DNA from: Tetramitus jugosus | Taxonomy: Eukaryota; Protista; Heterolobosea | Assembly (NCBI GenBank): GCA_937625935.1 | Contig: OW569356.1 | Coordinates: 248,001 to 312,000, forward strand | Direction: 5' to 3' | DNA length: 64,000 nucleotides | In this document: piece after piece, positions 39,461-48,087 of the stretch | Layout of the letters: each line of letters starts with the position of its first letter | Position numbering within the stretch: the stretch's first letter is position 1 | Made by a program: the position numbers and the translations under genes | The notes under the pieces: model-generated | What the model was told of the DNA's origin: nothing | What the model saw: only the letters and a program-made list of their open reading frames with translations | Database searches by the model: none

Positions 39461-40089
39461 GTTGTTATTATTTTTTGTATGTGCGTGTGAGCTGAGTCAG
39501 AGTGTGTTTTTGTATTTGTTGCTTTTTTTTGGGGGGGATGGGGGTGATGATTCGGATAAAAAGTTTGTGTGATATCTCTGTGTGTGCTGTGTGTATGTGT
39601 GGGGTGACACTATCAGTACTGATATCGGAGTGCTAGAGGGTGTTGTTGTTGTTGAGTTGGTTTGGAGAAATATGGGGAAGCAGGTTCTCAATTTTAAAGG
39701 CGCAAGAAAAAAACCATGGCAGAACAATGGAGATTTGTGAAAAGCCCGTGGCAACTCGGGCGAGTTTTGTGTCGTCGCACTCTCCGTTGGTCCACAAACG
39801 TCTCGTGGGAGATTTCGACCAAACGGCGATATCGGGTAAATGTTCAAAGACGTTAACAATTTTGCTGTAAAGCAATGGGGAATTTCTTTCCTTCTTCCAC
39901 TTTGCCATCCAAGGATCTTCCAAGCCAAAAGATCAATATTAACGTTTACGCAAAATAGGCCGCCATTGAGATTGGCCGCCAAGCAGAAAAAAACCGGGAC
40001 CCAAGGCTTGGGAACTTTCTGTGCGAATAAACAACCCAACGACCTACCAACATCATCATCACCACTTGCATTAATTATTCACCTCTTTG

Positions 40090-41937
40090 ATGTTGAATTT
40101 TTTGAAGGAACACAATCGTTATCTCTCACTGAATGAAGGTGATGATCACCCATACGACGATGATGAAGAGAATAGCAACCATCGTCATAGCAATAATGAA
40201 GAATTGAATCTGTTGGGTTCTCATCATAATCACAACAACAGGGGCGTCACCACGCGAGCCAACAAGGCATCCCTATCACTGATTGTTCAACTACCAGATG
40301 ACACACTGGTCAACATTTTTTCATTCTTGTCTGTCGATACCATTCTCAATGTTTCTCTCGTTTGTCGCAATTGGTTCGAGCTAACCGAGTTGAACGTGTT
40401 TTGGAAACCGATATTTGAAAAGGCCATTTTCAACAGTTCTATTCCACGTTATGTCCTCTATCAACACAGAGCATCATCATGGTGGAAGACGATTCAAGAG
40501 AGATTTGATTTTAGTGAGAGAATGATACAGGCACCTCATGCCGCACCTCCCATCTTGCCTGTCACTGTACCTACTACTACAACTGCTGCTGCCAATAATA
40601 ATAATAACAATAACAATAGCAATGGTGATGACATTGATGATGATGATGACAGTGGTGATGAAAATGGTGGTGATTACAATAGCAACACTAGTCTTCAGAT
40701 ATCAAAGCGCGGAAGACGACAATTGTATGATATGATCAATCGACTCGTCTATGAAAAGTACTACAAGGGACAATCGACTCAATACCTTCATCACTTGTCA
40801 ACACCACTGTATTACAAGACTTGTTACTACTATCTGCATGGTTATCAAGTCGTTGGAACGAGAAGGTACGTGCGTCAACAAGAGATTCAAAGAAAGGCTG
40901 CACGTTACAATGAGACGTGCACCACATGTGGAATGAATTATTTGCTGTATGCAGTTGTGCCATTGTCCACGCTGTTGTTCACACTGTTCATGATTGCATT
41001 GTTGTTGAAGGAAACAATAGGAGTACCAGAGTTTGTGAAGCAGATGATTAAGGAGAAAGAGCACAAGGATGGTCCAAAGATCAATGTGAATCAACATTCT
41101 GATCTTTGGTGGTTCCCAGTGTTCTTGCCCTTTTTTGCTGGATTGGCGCTATGGTACATTTTGCTCCTACAGGTCAATGTGAAGCACTTTGTCCGGTATT
41201 TGAGTCACATTCGACAGAATTATAAGATTGTTTCCTATGCCATCATTGTATTTGCCTATTTCACAAGTGTCATCATGTTTAGTGTACTAGGCATGCTTGC
41301 ACTCATGTTTCCATATGACAAGAAGGCAAGCATAGAGAATTGCAAGTGGATCTGGTTGCGGAAGATATCACACAACGATTTGTTGCTCTTATCGCCGATT
41401 GTTGCAGGTATTATACTCGTGAATTTCATTTGGCCTCTATTGCAGTTTATTGTGTTCTCTATCCGACGCAGAGGCAATTGCATTTCAGTCAACTGTTTAC
41501 GCAAGAGTGTTTTCCAATTGTTTGTCTACGGTGGAGGCATTATCTGTCTGATCATGTTCATTGCTGTGATGATATCGAATTATACGGAGACCGAGCAACA
41601 AAAGGAGAAGGGAGGAAGCAAACTCACCTACTTGTTCCAAAACTTGGCCTTTGTTCCTCTGTATCTCATCCAGATTGCCATTGTGGGGCTGTTCATGTTC
41701 CTATTTTATCGGTTGTGGTACTCTGTACCTCTGGCTGTTCGGTTCAAAGTTCGGGTGTCCTGTAGCGTTCTGGCCGTATTGATCGTGCTCTCCACAGCAA
41801 TGCTTATTTCATTTGAGCTCCTGCTTGCGATTCGAGGATTGTCTGTTTACCTCTTAATCCCTCTCATCCCTCTTCCAACAGCTCTTTGCTCCATATTCTA
41901 TACTATCCTTTATTTGAAGAGAGTGTTGTTCGGGTGA
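40090..41937 (+). CDS. F-box protein with multi-pass transmembrane C-terminal half
   Basis: F-box LPDDTLVNIFSFLSVDTILNVSLVCRNW..FW, then about 8 hydrophobic helices including WWFPVFLPFF and AFVPLYL. Confidence 0.82.
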   Translation: MLNFLKEHNRYLSLNEGDDHPYDDDEENSNHRHSNNEELNLLGSHHNHNNRGVTTRANKASLSLIVQLPDDTLVNIFSFLSVDTILNVSLVCRNWFELTELNVFWKPIFEKAIFNSSIPRYVLYQHRASSWWKTIQERFDFSERMIQAPHAAPPILPVTVPTTTTAAANNNNNNNNSNGDDIDDDDDSGDENGGDYNSNTSLQISKRGRRQLYDMINRLVYEKYYKGQSTQYLHHLSTPLYYKTCYYYLHGYQVVGTRRYVRQQEIQRKAARYNETCTTCGMNYLLYAVVPLSTLLFTLFMIALLLKETIGVPEFVKQMIKEKEHKDGPKINVNQHSDLWWFPVFLPFFAGLALWYILLLQVNVKHFVRYLSHIRQNYKIVSYAIIVFAYFTSVIMFSVLGMLALMFPYDKKASIENCKWIWLRKISHNDLLLLSPIVAGIILVNFIWPLLQFIVFSIRRRGNCISVNCLRKSVFQLFVYGGGIICLIMFIAVMISNYTETEQQKEKGGSKLTYLFQNLAFVPLYLIQIAIVGLFMFLFYRLWYSVPLAVRFKVRVSCSVLAVLIVLSTAMLISFELLLAIRGLSVYLLIPLIPLPTALCSIFYTILYLKRVLFG

Positions 41938-42798
41938 ACGTGTTTTGTCAACCATTTTGCAGCCCTAAAATTGAGCCATCCATTTTTGCTTAGGACTAAT
42001 TCTCAACTGACTTACCCAGAATATGGATTTGAATAAAAGTAAAAGAATTTGACTTCAGTTTTAACAGAACAAGGTTAAAGAATGGGTTTCGAGAGTAGCT
42101 AACTGGAGATGAATATCCATGTATCAGAAGATGCAGGAAGACATGGTAATGGAGATCACCTTGGACAAACAAATCCAATTTTAATCAACGATATTGCTCA
42201 GAGTGAGAAGATGTACCAGAAGAACAGGCTGATATGCAAGAGAGAAGCGTATCCAGCAAATGTGAATACAACGGGCAATCTATACAAGTCAACACAACTG
42301 AAAAGGAAAGAAGATCAGCACAGTTACAACCAGTAAACATTACTGTCCTGACTTCTGATTCTGATGAATTTGCGCAATTACTGAACCGTTTCAACTTCAG
42401 GACAACGTGTTTCGAGGATTCTCCTTTCATCCACACTATCCTTTATTTGAAGAAAATGATGTTCGTGTGTAAGTGTTGCCAGCGGAATAGCGCAGTTAAA
42501 ATTGAGCCGTCCTTCCCTTTTCGTTCAACTGCTCTGACAGCTGAATGACCGCCAAAAGTCCCCTTCAAAAAGAACGATGTTTGTCCCTTGGAGTAGTCCA
42601 CCACCAGAACAACAAAAAGAACAGATTCAAATTATCACACGCCCAATATCCATACTCTTTTTATCACGCACATTCACATTACCTCAAACAAGCGTGACTG
42701 ACACAAAATAATAAAGTAACCAACGAACGAGACAAAATCAAACAAACAAACAGGATAGATTTGTTGTGTATCGTGTAAGAGACAGAGAGAAAGATAAA

Positions 42799-43673
42799 AT
42801 GGGCGCCAAACAATCAAAAACCACTTATTATTACTTTGGTGATTGTCAGCAACAACAACAGCAGCAGCAACACTCATCATCATCGACACTTGCTCTCGCC
42901 AATGTCAACATGGATGAAAGGGTGAAGATTTTGTTGTTGGGAACAGGTGAGGGAGGAAAGGCAACGATATTCAAGGTTTGTTCTTACTTGTTGTTGTTGT
43001 TGTTTTTTTAATTTTCCAATATGGAACATTTCACTGACACCAACCAACCAACCGAACCAACAAATGAAATACAAAAAACCAAATGATCATTTTTTTTCCC
43101 TCATACACACATACACACACAGCAAATGATTCATCAATATGGCACAAAGAGAAAGAGAGACAGGACAAGTGACCAAGAAGAAGACAACTTTCTCAATTCA
43201 TATCAGAGTCTAGAAGTGCGTCGATCCTTCATACCCATCATCCATCGAAACTGCATACTCGCCATGTACAATCTCCTCCAAGGTGCTCTCCATGTCTTTC
43301 ACCTGCCCCTAGACATGACACCCAATTCTCCGACTAGGAATGCAGTGGACAGCATTGCTCTGGAGAGGGATCATGCCATTAGTTTTGAAGATTGGGCACT
43401 GTCTCAAACCATTGGTCGCATGATACAATTCCTATGGAATCACTGTCCAGAGATTCAAGAGGCATACAATAGGAGAAATGAACTGGAATTGGAGTACATG
43501 GACAGTGCGAGGTATTGGTTCACTGAGATTGATCGATTGATTGAGCCGTCCTATGTGCCAAAGATTGATGACATTATGCGCATGAGGGTCAAGACGACCG
43601 GTATCGTCGAAACAGAGTTGTTCTTGCCTATTCGAGTCAGAAGAAAACATCATCAACAACATCAATTGCAATT

Positions 43674-43709
<36 letters not shown>

Positions 43710-45321
43710 GTATTACAATAGCAACAATAGTACACAAGTGCTCTCTTCATCACCATCATTGCCATCCTCTCTGTCTCCGCCATTGTCATTACAGCATCAT
43801 CATCATCATCATCACAATAGTCATGGTAGTCACAATCAGCCATCGTCTCTCATGACCACGTTGGCCATGTCAGAAGAATGTGAAGCAGCAGTACATCAAG
43901 TTTCTCCTTCTTCTTCATTGGATGATCATCCAGTGGTGCGCAATCAACAACAACAACAACAACCACAACAACAACATCAGAACAACAATAATAACAACAA
44001 TCATCACCAACACCAACAACACCAACAACATCAAAATCATCAAATGGATGAAATGCTGTACAAGAAATCAACTCTTGTTCTTGTCGGATCACAGAGAAAT
44101 GAGCGAAAAAAGTGGATTCATGCGTTCGATGACGTGACAGCCATTGTGTTTGTGGTGGCCCTGTCAGAGTACAATCAACTCTTGTATGAGGATGGGAGAA
44201 CCAATCGAATGCACGAGAGTTTACTGCTGTTCCCAGAGATTGTCAATTCGAGAAGATTTGAAAACGTGCCCATCATTCTCCTGTTCAACAAGATTGACGT
44301 CTTCATGGAGAAGATTCAAAAGTTTGACTTGACGTGTGCCTTCCCTGACATACCAGACAACCTCAAGTTGGACAATCAACCGTGGAGAGATTTTGTGCCT
44401 CAGATTATTCAGGAGAAGATTGACATTGCATTTGAGAATATTTCACAGCAGTCGAGATGTCACAGAAAGTTGGCAGATGAGTTGAGAGATTATGAGGAAC
44501 AGAGAGGACCAGTCATGTCTGATGATGAGCTGGAGGAGGGAGATGAGAATCATCCGTCCAATAAGCGAAGCAAAGTGAGGCGATCTCTCGTCCCAAAGTT
44601 CATGAAGGGTCGAAAGAGCAAGAGAGTCGACACATCTCACACTGCACTTGTCCAAATGATCGAAGAGGCCAGTAAAGCAAGCAAAAGCAATGTGTGCACG
44701 CCGTTGGAGATAGGAATACAAAATCCGTTCGAGTTGTTTGATGAGGATTGTGACAGTTCTGCCGACACAGCAAGCGAAGCCAATAATTTATTTAAGGGGG
44801 TGGCATATGATGTGGTTCTGTATATATTCATGTTCTTAGAGCCGAAAGACCTTGTAGAGATCAATCTGGTGTGCCTTGATTGGTACAAAATATCCGAGTC
44901 AGATATCTTGTGGAGAACCTTCTGCCTGAGGTATCAAGCTGACTTGCAGGAGAGTGTCGTCATGAAGGTCTATCAACGATACAAGTCTGAATCTAGGGTA
45001 ACAGAGAGAGAAATCATCTCGGATAGCAATCAGAGAGAGTCTCAGATTCTTCGTTCTAATTCTCTCTCGATAATGCTTCCTAGTCAACGTGCATCGGAGG
45101 ATGAATACCGTTTATTAGAGAAAGGAGCATACAAGTATTATTATCAATTCGGAGAATTGTTTGTGAGCCGAAGTATAGCATTCATTGCAGACCAGTTTCT
45201 GAGACAAACGAATCGAAAGGAGGTAAGGACAGAAGTAACATGTGCCATTGATACAGTGGGATTCAAACCCATTATGGAGCGTGTGATCGCCGGCATACTG
45301 CGAACAAATAAACAAAAGTAA
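42799..45321 (+). CDS. Divergent heterotrimeric G-protein alpha subunit with internal F-box; exons 42799-42975 and 43123-45321
   Basis: [23 protein letters not shown]|[58 protein letters not shown]-box at 44788-44925, TCAID. Confidence 0.9.
42976..43122 (+). other. Spliceosomal intron (147 nt) in G-alpha gene
   Basis: AAG|GTTTGT...CACTGAC...CAG|CAA ATG restores TIFKQM. Confidence 0.9.
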
Positions 45322-45323
45322 TC

Positions 45324-46337
45324 TCATCTAATTTTTCGTAACTGTTGCTGCAGCAGTCGATTCTTCTCGCTCAAGTCACGCAAGGCTTCTTCCCGTTTGA
45401 GAAGCTTTTCTTCCACTTCGGCTTGAGCTTGAAGCGCTTGTGCTAATCTTTCTTCTATGATTTGGTGATTAAGTGAATGCCTATGAGGTTGAGAAGTTAA
45501 AATCGTTGTTGTGATGGTTGATCTCCTATTCTCTTCGATTAAGTCGTTAGGCTTATCTTCTCGGCTTAGATATAGATCGACGGATGTTGTGGGAATTGTT
45601 CGAGATTTTAGTCTCTCGCTTATTGAACTTTTGGTCCGTCCCGTAAACTTCGTGTTAGCCGAGAGATCAACTATCTCTGGCTTGGATTCATTTTTACGCA
45701 AGGGAGTAGAAAGACTGGATGATTTGTCCAATGTAAGTTTGCTTTTTGTTCCCTTCCGAAGTTGTTCTACTTCCAATATGTGAATTTCTTCTTGTTGTTT
45801 CACTAGCTCTTCTAAATCGGATACAGTTTGTTCCAGCCTTTTACACTCCAATCTCGATTTTAATAAAGCGTCCCTTACCTCGCTTAATTCCTGACCCATT
45901 ACATCTTTTGCCATCTTAAGTTTTTCATTCTCAACAGCCAACTCATCCTTCTCTCTTTGCAGTGCTTCATTCTTCGTTTTGAGATCTAATATCGTTATCG
46001 AGTGATTACTGTGCGTTTCAGCTGCAACCAACCGCAGTGAATTTTCATGTTTTCTCATCAGAACCTCCATAAAAGCATTGCTGTCATGTTCGGGTTCCTC
46101 CAAAATCGAAAGAAGAGCGTTATCTATTCTTTGCTTAGTTGTGGGGGGTGGATTTTGTTGCTCTTGAATAGGTTCAGGATGTCCTTGTTCCATCCTTACC
46201 TTCTGAGGCTGGACACGATCTGAGCTCGTGGATCTGGGGGATGATGTCGCTGTGAGGTGAGCTCTATTCAGACTCGGATCGTTTGGATTGATAAAAGTCC
46301 TCAAATTTAACTTTACAGTCTTCACATTGGACATCAT
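45324..46337 (-). CDS. Hypothetical coiled-coil protein
   Basis: 337-aa ORF with E/K/L heptad-rich segments; family not recognised. Confidence 0.7.
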   Translation of the reverse strand: MMSNVKTVKLNLRTFINPNDPSLNRAHLTATSSPRSTSSDRVQPQKVRMEQGHPEPIQEQQNPPPTTKQRIDNALLSILEEPEHDSNAFMEVLMRKHENSLRLVAAETHSNHSITILDLKTKNEALQREKDELAVENEKLKMAKDVMGQELSEVRDALLKSRLECKRLEQTVSDLEELVKQQEEIHILEVEQLRKGTKSKLTLDKSSSLSTPLRKNESKPEIVDLSANTKFTGRTKSSISERLKSRTIPTTSVDLYLSREDKPNDLIEENRRSTITTTILTSQPHRHSLNHQIIEERLAQALQAQAEVEEKLLKREEALRDLSEKNRLLQQQLRKIR

Positions 46338-46401: not shown

Positions 46402-48087
46402 TTATTGACCTAACTCTTGATCAATTTGCGCAAGCTCTTGCTTCATCTCGTCAATATTACTTCTGATATCATTGATTCTTGTCAGGAATCTATTTTTCAT
46501 AGTTGGATTGGGCGTGTTGGCGTGCTGACGCTCATTCTCCTCCAACTCTCTCTGTCTTTCCTCGAGACTAATAGCCACAGCGTTTCTTCGCTCGACCAAT
46601 CGATGCTTATCGATCATTTGGACTAATTCGGGAGATGCTACCTCTTCTTCTTCCTCATCATCGTCGTCAGCCATGGTGTGGTGATCATCGACATTCATCA
46701 TGGACTCGAACATTTCTTCATCGTCGTCTTCTTCTTCTTCAGATGCAGCATCACTTCTGGAGTCTTCGTCAAACGTACTGGACGTAGGACTCTTCTCTGA
46801 TACTGGTCCACCAAGCATTGAGGACATGAGCCCGCCTGATTGAGCGAACGCCGCAGCAAAATTGGTTGGTCCAGTGGTAGAGCTGGCCACTGAGACAGCA
46901 TCATCATCTGAATGACCAGAGAAACTATCGTCATTCATTTGAGACAGAGACGCGAACGAAGCCATATCCGATGTGCTATTGTTATCGTACATGGAAGGAG
47001 AGGACGTCGATGTGGTGACACGATTGCCCAGCAAGTAGGGCGTGAGAACAGATTGTCGTTGACCGCGTCCCTTGTTGGTCATTGCCGACGAAGAAGTGGA
47101 TGGACTTGCCAGAGCTACATTACTTGCCAGTGTGGATGGTATGGATGGTCGGTCCTCATCTGAGGAATCCTCGTCGTCCGATGATCCAGACGAAGAGTCA
47201 GTGTCACTGGAGAAGTCATCAAACTCGTCTTCCTTGTCCGTCAGCACCTCTATAATCACATCTTGCTCATCCTCCTTTGTCATCTCATTGAACTGATCAA
47301 CCATGTGCTTAATGTCACTCTTTGAAGCATCCAGTGTCCTTGCTTCATAGTGATGATAAATGTTGTGAGTGCTGGGCGTGATACCAGACATGGAAGACAA
47401 CAACAATCGCTTCCTCTTCTTCTTCTTCAGTTTGTTCATGTGAGCGTGAATGTGATGATCAGTGTTGTGCGTACCACTAGTACCAGTAGTAGTTGCACTG
47501 TGATGATCCATGGAAGACGCAGCTTCTCTCTGTCTTTTCATACTATTCAATTCCTTGTCCAACTGTTCTCTAGTCTTGACTAGAATCATTTGAGAGACGT
47601 CTCCTGCTTTAAAATACGTTTGATAATCAATGGACTTGTATGCTTCGATAATGCATGGCATATCCAACAACTCACAAGGATAGTATTCGTCTCGGAAGCG
47701 CAATCGGCCTCTTCTGTGTTTTTTGATTGTGTATTCCACATCGGATATATAACCATCATCATCATTATTATTATTATCAATCATACTATTGTTGGTGCTA
47801 TTGTTGGTACTATTGTGATGAAGGTGGTGGCCACTGCCATTCATTTGACTGTTGCTATCCTTGTTGTTATTTTTTTCAGTGTCCTTCTTGGGTTTGGAAA
47901 TGATGGCACTCTTCAAGAATTGAAGTATACTCGGATCATCACCAAACGCAATATCAAGATCCAACTCAATCAATTTACTAGAGTCTTTGGATGTATCGTG
48001 ATTCTGAAGTAGTGTATGAATTTTGGAGGCGAGTTCAGGTGGTACTCTCAGGATGCATTGTTGTTCTTCAATCTTGTTCGCTGACAT
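46402..48087 (-). CDS. TAF7: TFIID subunit TAF7
   Basis: EEQQCILRVP, LLDMPCIIEAYKSID..YFKAGDVSQMILV and SGITP (TAFII55_N); acidic region; C-terminal NPTMKNRF coiled coil. Confidence 0.88.
   Translation of the reverse strand: MSANKIEEQQCILRVPPELASKIHTLLQNHDTSKDSSKLIELDLDIAFGDDPSILQFLKSAIISKPKKDTEKNNNKDSNSQMNGSGHHLHHNSTNNSTNNSMIDNNNNDDDGYISDVEYTIKKHRRGRLRFRDEYYPCELLDMPCIIEAYKSIDYQTYFKAGDVSQMILVKTREQLDKELNSMKRQREAASSMDHHSATTTGTSGTHNTDHHIHAHMNKLKKKKRKRLLLSSMSGITPSTHNIYHHYEARTLDASKSDIKHMVDQFNEMTKEDEQDVIIEVLTDKEDEFDDFSSDTDSSSGSSDDEDSSDEDRPSIPSTLASNVALASPSTSSSAMTNKGRGQRQSVLTPYLLGNRVTTSTSSPSMYDNNSTSDMASFASLSQMNDDSFSGHSDDDAVSVASSTTGPTNFAAAFAQSGGLMSSMLGGPVSEKSPTSSTFDEDSRSDAASEEEEDDDEEMFESMMNVDDHHTMADDDDEEEEEVASPELVQMIDKHRLVERRNAVAISLEERQRELEENERQHANTPNPTMKNRFLTRINDIRSNIDEMKQELAQIDQELGQ

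Follow-up and report, generated by a model that had tools for sequence, protein, structure and literature searches.

We analysed a 64,000-nucleotide stretch of the Tetramitus jugosus genome (contig OW569356.1, positions 248,001 to 312,000 of the forward strand; hereafter the window, to which the positions below refer), focusing on the plus-strand gene at 42799-45321. This gene encodes a G-protein alpha subunit (G-alpha) with two large insertions, the second of which places an F-box inside the GTPase domain (Table 1). The gene is expressed, its F-box scores above the cut-off of the corresponding hidden Markov model (HMM), and the architecture is conserved and of single origin. A preliminary description of the locus, made from the letters alone, had put the G-alpha and the F-box-like motif in one stop-free frame. 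From 42799 the frame is not free of stops: a GT-AG intron of 147 nt with two in-frame stops separates exon 1 from exon 2, whose start restores the usual G-alpha sequence after the P-loop.

The transcript structure was assessed with RNA contigs. Contigs X1, X2 and X3, which come from three RNA runs, joined position 42973 directly to 43121 with a 2-nt AG ambiguity, showing that the intron is spliced. An oligo-dT metatranscriptome contig of 2148 nt spanned 43148-45313 and crossed both low-complexity tracts; over the F-box insert (44044-45313) it was gap-free with 6 substitutions, and the other RNA runs agreed with an uninterrupted F-box insert, all of these contigs being assemblies that cannot prove a single molecule. 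Because the RNA contigs, which stem from several studies, splice the intron yet run unbroken through the F-box insert, insert 2 is exonic, which was the outcome that the preliminary description had asked RNA data to decide. In each run, a further contig matched just 42 nt of the window (44091-44132), diverged on both sides and read ...DVGG upstream; they derive from canonical G-alpha paralogues, whose transcripts have the conserved switch II/alpha2 coding words in common with the window gene.

Table 1. Features of the Tetramitus jugosus G-alpha gene with a nested F-box, in window positions. UTR, untranslated region; AF2, AlphaFold2; pLDDT, predicted local distance difference test; aa, amino acids.
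Feature	Position	Strand	Content or evidence
5' UTR, minimum extent	42602..42798	+	RNA contigs X1, X2, X3 start at 42602/42675 and run on into exon 1
Exon 1, 59 codons	42799..42975	+	MGAKQSK start, poly-Q/Ser tract in the place of alphaN, beta1, P-loop
P-loop GTGEGGKAT	42940-42966	+	Exon 1
Intron, 147 nt, GT..AG, two in-frame stops	42976..43122	+	RNA contigs; intron at the same codon in orthologous contig L001
Exon 2	43123..45321	+	Begins QMIHQYG
Rest of alpha1, helical domain, switch I	43123..43620	+	PDB alignment to Go/Gt (residues 83-166); AF2 pLDDT >90; best Foldseek matches are G-alpha structures
Switch I RVKTTG	43585-43602	+	Aligns to Go and Gt switch I
Insert 1, poly-Q/H/N low complexity, in the beta2-beta3 hairpin	43621..44055	+	About 145 residues; disordered in AF2; poorly conserved
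beta3, altered switch II, alpha3, NKID, alphaG	44056..44361	+	Strongest Pfam and PDB match; Go-alpha at 105 bits
Switch II LVGSQ	44080-44094	+	PDB alignment
NKID	44287-44298	+	Aligned in PDB comparison
Insert 2, 271 aa, in the alphaG-alpha4 loop	44362..45174	+	PDB alignment; AF2; orthologues P0002, P0003, P0171, P0172
Insert 2, conserved helical segment	44362-44532	+	Followed by a basic/acidic linker, then the F-box
F-box domain	44788..44934	+	Pfam; AF2 helices; orthologue identity; predicted Skp1 contacts
Insert 2, long helical linker after the F-box	44950-45117	+	AF2
alpha4, beta6, alpha5, stop	45175..45321	+	Third collinear PDB piece; strand 702-705 and helix 711-731, pLDDT ~90 (AF2)
TCAID	45238-45252	+	beta6
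TAA stop	45319-45321	+	End of exon 2

To characterise the G-alpha part, exons 1 and 2 were searched separately and unjoined; the AF2 model covers exon 2, and the full-length fold is that of the Acrasis kona orthologue. Exon 2 matched the Pfam G-alpha family (PF00503, 222.7 bits; cut-off 48.8), and exon 1 alone gave a weak G-alpha match (23.4 bits). The best PDB matches were Go, Gt and Gi (~1e-41), which aligned in three collinear pieces (exon-2 residues): the helical domain and switch I (83-166), switch II through NKID to alphaG (318-413), and alpha4, beta6 with TCAID, and alpha5 (685-729). The exon-2 model had an overall pLDDT of 71.6 and a predicted TM-score (pTM) of 0.65, with the G-alpha parts above 90. 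In Foldseek it matched 1tnd_A (E 1.4e-11, target TM-score 0.66), the G-alpha matches lying at about 0.66-0.69, and both AF2 and Foldseek indicated a Ras-like fold with an all-helical domain between G1 and G2. All the motifs named in the preliminary description were found in the translation of 42799-45321. The roughly 300 amino acids that it had placed between NKID (exon-2 residues 389-392) and TCAID (706-710) were counted as 313 residues; in Gi-alpha-1, the corresponding distance is about 51 residues.

A second large insertion, insert 1, was present besides the F-box insert noted earlier. Compared with P0002 (the region lies outside the coverage of P0003), it showed 30% identity, against 82-89% in its flanks, and it was much shorter in the Acrasis kona orthologue; insert 1 is lineage-specific and variable in length. 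Its poly-Q/H tracts (43637-43824 and 43937-44043) were exactly 9 nt (3 codons) longer or shorter in RNA contigs of different runs, which is an in-frame repeat-length polymorphism among strains.

Within insert 2, Pfam identified an F-box-like domain in exon 2 (PF12937, 44809-44931) at 37.5 bits against a cut-off of 24.3, and the genome scan gave it 42.3 bits. Because this F-box ranked 12th of at least 136 F-box-like matches in the genome and is conserved in orthologues, the match is not due to chance. AF2 predicted a helical bundle (residues 556-604) with helices at 562-569, 574-580, 585-591 and 594-604 (pLDDT ~90), followed by a long, confidently predicted helix (610-642) that leads back into alpha4; the F-box helix pattern was alike in the model of the Acrasis kona orthologue. 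In the exon-2 model, the helix at 610-642 resembles the linker that leads from the F-box to the substrate domain in ordinary F-box proteins. The layout differs from the usual one, in which the F-box precedes a separate substrate-binding domain: here it sits inside the GTPase domain, between alphaG and alpha4. The identity of the F-box (81% to P0002, 66% to P0003) was close to that of the GTPase core (89% and 76%, respectively) and far above that of the flanking linkers (52-55% and 31-32%), indicating that the constraint on the F-box is comparable to that on the core. Its hydrophobic core positions and one Trp were conserved or invariant across the family. The F-box-like motif that the preliminary description had seen between NKID and TCAID was thus borne out by Pfam and, as a prediction, by the AF2 bundle.

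We further predicted the complex of window residues 540-640 with the organism's own Skp1 in three runs, alongside three controls. The docking score was 0.87 in all three runs, and the best control reached 0.01; in calibration, 51 of 78 solved complexes and 2 of 108 mismatched pairs attained the docking mark. The runs agreed in at least 78% of contacts (partner pLDDT 64-65). The predicted contacts joined F-box residues 553-588 to Skp1 residues 102-165, the C-terminal helices of Skp1 that form the canonical interface. The preliminary description had proposed Pfam scans for G-alpha and F-box-like and a modelled complex with Skp1; both domains scored above cut-off, and the model places Skp1 where an F-box would be expected to hold it. 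The SCF parts of the genome comprise one canonical Skp1 (L014, 168 aa) together with at least 8 cullin and at least 136 F-box-like loci. Another Skp1-type domain, partial and scoring 58 bits, was located at G000:C34:118146-118244 (L015) within an 877-aa open frame, which may represent a Skp1 fusion protein.

The distribution of the architecture was examined by several searches. A word-indexed search limited to insert 2 and the C-terminus returned three proteins, all annotated as G-alpha and F-box-like. Orthologues of the same layout, with 58-66% identity, were P0002, which lies on L001 (a genomic contig of a related species), and P0172 of Acrasis kona. L001 carries the first intron at the same codon, the GKA P-loop, LVGSQ and the TCAID tail. 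It also has an extra intron (2672-2781), which follows ...KGAYK, immediately precedes alpha4 and contains a TACTAAC-like branch site; this alpha4-proximal intron is absent from the window gene and was gained or lost between close relatives. The T. jugosus genome examined (26.35 Mb, 56 contigs) contains at least 25 G-alpha loci, and a search of it with the insert recovered more G-alpha genes with an F-box right after NKxD/alphaG. By Pfam and alignment, at least five paralogues carry the F-box at the same nested site: L006 (F-box-like, 19.8 bits), L007 (26.1 bits), L008 (17.7 bits), L009 (32.5 bits) and L010, which aligned without a Pfam F-box match. Three paralogues in the genome read THxD in place of NKxD.

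A profile of the region from NKxD to the C-terminus was searched against 1.84 billion representatives, yielding 46 clusters at E<=1e-10, of which 15 reached E<=1e-30. Among the 46 sequences scanned (the window gene and 45 matches), 36 matched G-alpha and 41 matched F-box-like. Members were found in Willaertia magna (KAL9656181.1 and KAL9652580.1), Acrasis kona (KAL0489080.1 and a 704-aa protein named 'G(q) subunit alpha') and Naegleria fowleri (FDP41_002612), and family members are listed in public databases as hypothetical or automatically named proteins. A fungal origin, at first suggested by intron motifs resembling branch points, was discarded, since these relatives belong to Willaertia, Acrasis and Naegleria. 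The family signature, an F-box between NKxD/alphaG and alpha4 preceded by FPxLPxxL and followed by (Y/W)K(Y/F)(Y/F), was present in the window gene. We built a maximum-likelihood tree from a short alignment of 89 columns (switch II to alphaG, insert excluded) with 34 F-box-bearing sequences and 14 non-F-box G-alphas, the latter from the T. jugosus genome only. All 34 F-box-bearing G-alphas fell on one side of a branch (ultrafast bootstrap 96; Shimodaira-Hasegawa-like approximate likelihood ratio test 92), a pattern that fits one ancient F-box insertion followed by radiation. As judged from sequence, the family is conserved across Heterolobosea, including the pathogen genus Naegleria, and has many paralogues.

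A feature search of the ESM Atlas gave no usable match. In the literature covered, which did not extend to a 2011 survey of likely relevance, we found no account of a G-alpha bearing a nested F-box, and the Acrasis genome paper does not mention the architecture. The preliminary description had called the architecture unfamiliar; this stands insofar as no paper describing it was found, whereas public databases already hold the heterolobosean family under automatic names.

The nucleotide-binding motifs of the window protein were compared with those of canonical G-alphas. Switch I (RVKTTGI) keeps the catalytic Arg and the Mg2+-binding Thr, the guanine-recognition motifs NKID (G4) and TCAID (G5) are both kept, and switch II keeps its Gln. 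In G1, GTGEGGKAT has Ala in place of the Ser/Thr of GxxxxGK(S/T), and in G3, where DxxGQ is expected, LVGSQ replaces the canonical DVGGQ, with Asp changed to Leu and Gly to Ser. Of the motifs listed in the preliminary description, switch I, NKID and TCAID hold, and the P-loop departs from the canonical form. The P-loop Ser and the switch II Asp are the two protein groups that hold Mg2+, the switch II Gly senses the gamma-phosphate, and mutations at these G-alpha positions produce dominant-negative, non-switching G-alphas. The GKA P-loop also occurred in L001, L009, P0009, P0171 and P0172, and the tree and motif comparison defined an 11-member subclade by its altered G motifs. Since the Acrasis kona orthologue has them too (GAGEGGKAT and LMGSQ), the altered Mg2+ motifs are old and have been maintained. 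By comparison, the N. fowleri member P0170 keeps the canonical GKS, DTGGQ and NKKD beside its F-box.

The termini were also compared. The N-terminus MGAKQSK matches the N-myristoylation pattern, and the 42 residues before beta1 are poly-Q/Ser low complexity and not an amphipathic alphaN; in the full-length model of the Acrasis kona orthologue (pLDDT 76.1, pTM 0.74), no helix was predicted at residues 1-25 (pLDDT <50). The extreme C-terminal tail differs between orthologues. Because both Mg2+-holding residues are replaced and an N-terminal helix is apparently lacking, canonical receptor or GTP gating appears doubtful for the window paralogue and its orthologues.

Two further unusual G-alphas were observed in the genome. 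At L013 (G000:C14:383000-388500), a minus-strand open reading frame (ORF, 3-2291) encodes a G-alpha complete through beta6/alpha5 with a C-terminal BTB extension (Pfam, 22.0 bits; cut-off 20.5), which is a second kind of fusion between a G-alpha and a cullin adaptor in T. jugosus. A terminal F-box in L013 was considered and rejected, as only a short LPVELxxxIFxYL motif near the end was seen, without a Pfam match. At L012 (G000:C35:409500-414500), an ORF (2-2647) encodes a very divergent G-alpha domain (52.6 bits) fused to TPR repeats and, at the N-terminus, a Kelch propeller.

Among the neighbouring genes in the window, the one directly upstream (40087-41937, plus strand) also codes for an F-box protein, which scores 44.9 bits with the F-box-like model and 33.3 bits with the F-box model and whose C-terminal part is long. 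We rejected it as a recent F-box donor, the similarity being only generic (31% over 36 aa). Downstream, a convergent minus-strand gene without a Pfam match (45324-46337) has its stop 2 nt from that of the G-alpha gene, and the RNA contigs end at 45305-45313, at an AATAAA (45308-45313) within the last codons shortly 5' of the TAA. An AATAAA inside the last codons and a convergent stop at a distance of 2 nt imply that the 3' ends overlap or are extremely short. The minus-strand gene at 46405-48087 is an ordinary TAFII55 (TAF7) homologue (79.9 bits).

We consider it rather probable that the window protein is a membrane-tethered receptor for substrates of a Skp1-Cullin-F-box (SCF) ligase, or an SCF-coupled scaffold, in which the G-alpha-like domain serves as a recognition module and not as a canonical switch. 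The myristoylation-motif N-terminus would anchor the protein at the membrane, and the F-box, which docks Skp1 in silico, would most likely recruit Skp1-Cul1-Rbx1. The G-alpha fold would then take the role that WD40, LRR or Kelch domains have in ordinary F-box proteins, and the docked partner would be one that normally binds G-alpha, such as a receptor, G-beta-gamma, an RGS protein or an effector. The window paralogue and its orthologues would be expected to bind nucleotide without acting as a canonical Mg2+/GTP switch or heterotrimer partner, because NKxD, TCA, the catalytic Arg and the Gln are kept while the Mg2+ residues and the switch II Gly are replaced and alphaN is apparently missing. 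By analogy, the window paralogue resembles a natural 'dominant-negative-like' docking module. The membrane-tethered SCF adaptor of the preliminary description thus remains in its tethering, which fits the myristoylation pattern, and in its predicted Skp1 docking; its nucleotide or receptor gating is not supported for the window paralogue, where the Mg2+ positions and the switch II Gly are replaced, alphaN is apparently absent and the C-terminus is unconserved.

Several observations weigh against a switchless SCF receptor, and they were considered together with the other explanations. With the catalytic Arg, Gln, NKID and TCAID retained, some nucleotide cycle may persist, and since an N. fowleri member keeps all canonical G motifs next to its F-box, gating by nucleotide may even be the ancestral logic of the family. 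These same features, together with the retained switch I Thr and the presence in the genome of G-gamma genes and many canonical G-alphas, speak for a nucleotide- or receptor-gated SCF adaptor, in which GDP/GTP cycling under a receptor would set the availability of the F-box or the substrate site. We regard such gating as unlikely here, given that in the orthologue group of the window gene Ala replaces the P-loop Ser, either Leu or Met the switch II Asp, and Ser the switch II Gly, with alphaN apparently absent and a C-terminal tail that is not conserved between orthologues. The adverse evidence on the F-box itself is that the classical model PF00646 stayed below its cut-off (17.6 against 20.5 bits), that Ala-Tyr replaces the canonical Leu-Pro at the F-box start, and that the docking score may stem from the model having memorised the many solved complexes of Skp1 with F-boxes, its pass indicating likeness and not binding. 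The low PF00646 score and the degenerate start, and the existence of non-SCF Skp1-F-box complexes, would suit an F-box used outside a cullin ligase, be it with Skp1 only, as another protein-protein module or as a structural helical bundle. This use seems improbable against a predicted Skp1 interface that is canonical and passes its controls, and against F-box core positions conserved across the family.

The F-box might alternatively bring the SCF ligase to the G-alpha itself and so set its half-life. F-box proteins are commonly auto-ubiquitinated within SCF, Lys-rich linkers lie beside the F-box in insert 2, and in yeast, SCF-Cdc4 targets Gpa1 by way of a subdomain inserted in it. However, a short degron suffices for an SCF substrate, which needs no F-box; the predicted rigid helical linker from the F-box to alpha4 is like that of true substrate receptors; and the family has diversified into dozens of lineages, as substrate receptors do. 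A self-destruct device of this kind is accordingly quite unlikely. An annotation or assembly artefact, in which two genes or a retained intron had been taken for a single frame, has a next to negligible probability: one real intron with stops does lie inside 42799-45321, but the 2148-nt oligo-dT contig is unbroken from 43148 to 45313 across both inserts, in agreement with other runs. Reading the locus as two genes or as a retained intron is untenable because the frame is uninterrupted, the three final G-alpha elements are encoded 3' of the F-box, so that the fold is complete only with the whole frame translated, and the layout recurs in several species; the RNA contigs and the orthologues rule it out.

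A wider reading takes in the whole family. In Heterolobosea, the G-alpha fold may underlie an entire class of substrate receptors of the cullin-RING type, which would turn the state of a G-protein-like sensor, or its receptor docking, directly into ubiquitination of the bound partner. This class, which we put forward tentatively and at less than even chance, would take in the F-box-in-G-alpha proteins, some with intact GTPase motifs, and at least one G-alpha-BTB fusion; if it is real, it represents a signalling logic undescribed in any model organism. To our knowledge, the only known links between G-protein signalling and SCF ubiquitination act in trans. Here, two well-studied eukaryotic systems are fused in one polypeptide, with one domain nested within the other, and the fusion is conserved across a deep protist lineage with many paralogues. 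If the F-box is active, the family would provide a natural case of a GTPase fold serving as the substrate receptor of a ligase, would give direct access to the wiring of receptor or effector turnover in heterolobosean amoebae, and would offer a natural design for induced-proximity tools. The subclade without Mg2+ ligands offers a natural experiment on what a switchless G-alpha can do.

Compared with known systems, the window protein resembles canonical G-alphas (Gi/Go/Gt, PF00503) in its Ras-like and helical domains, switch I RVKTTG, NKxD and TCAxD, its N-terminal Gly for myristoylation and the intron after the P-loop, and differs from them in its two large insertions, GKA, LVGSQ, the apparent lack of alphaN and the unconserved C-terminal tail. 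It shares with SCF F-box proteins such as Skp2 and Fbxw7 an F-box-like domain above cut-off, a helical bundle with linker and a predicted canonical Skp1 interface; unlike theirs, its F-box is nested in a loop of the GTPase domain and is not N-terminal to WD40, LRR or Kelch domains. RhoBTB, an atypical small Rho-type GTPase with non-canonical nucleotide behaviour whose C-terminal BTB domains bind Cul3, likewise combines a GTPase domain and a cullin-adaptor module in one polypeptide, whereas the window protein is a G-alpha with an internal F-box and would bind Skp1-Cul1. The plant XLG proteins are G-alpha-like, with degenerate nucleotide and Mg2+ motifs and an N-terminal Cys-rich extension, and are functionally linked to PUB E3 ligases. 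They too are degenerate G-alpha-like proteins with an added domain, but the addition is N-terminal and not an internal F-box, and nothing points to a shared origin of the added domains. In yeast Gpa1, whose insert lies in the helical domain, SCF-Cdc4 also acts through an inserted G-alpha subdomain; there the link is in trans and Gpa1 is the substrate, whereas the window G-alpha carries the ligase-docking module itself. The MEKK-alpha of Dictyostelium has an F-box (PMC5666861) and is thus another amoeba signalling enzyme with an F-box in the same polypeptide, differing in that it is a kinase with WD40 repeats and not a GTPase, and in that its F-box is not nested in the catalytic fold.

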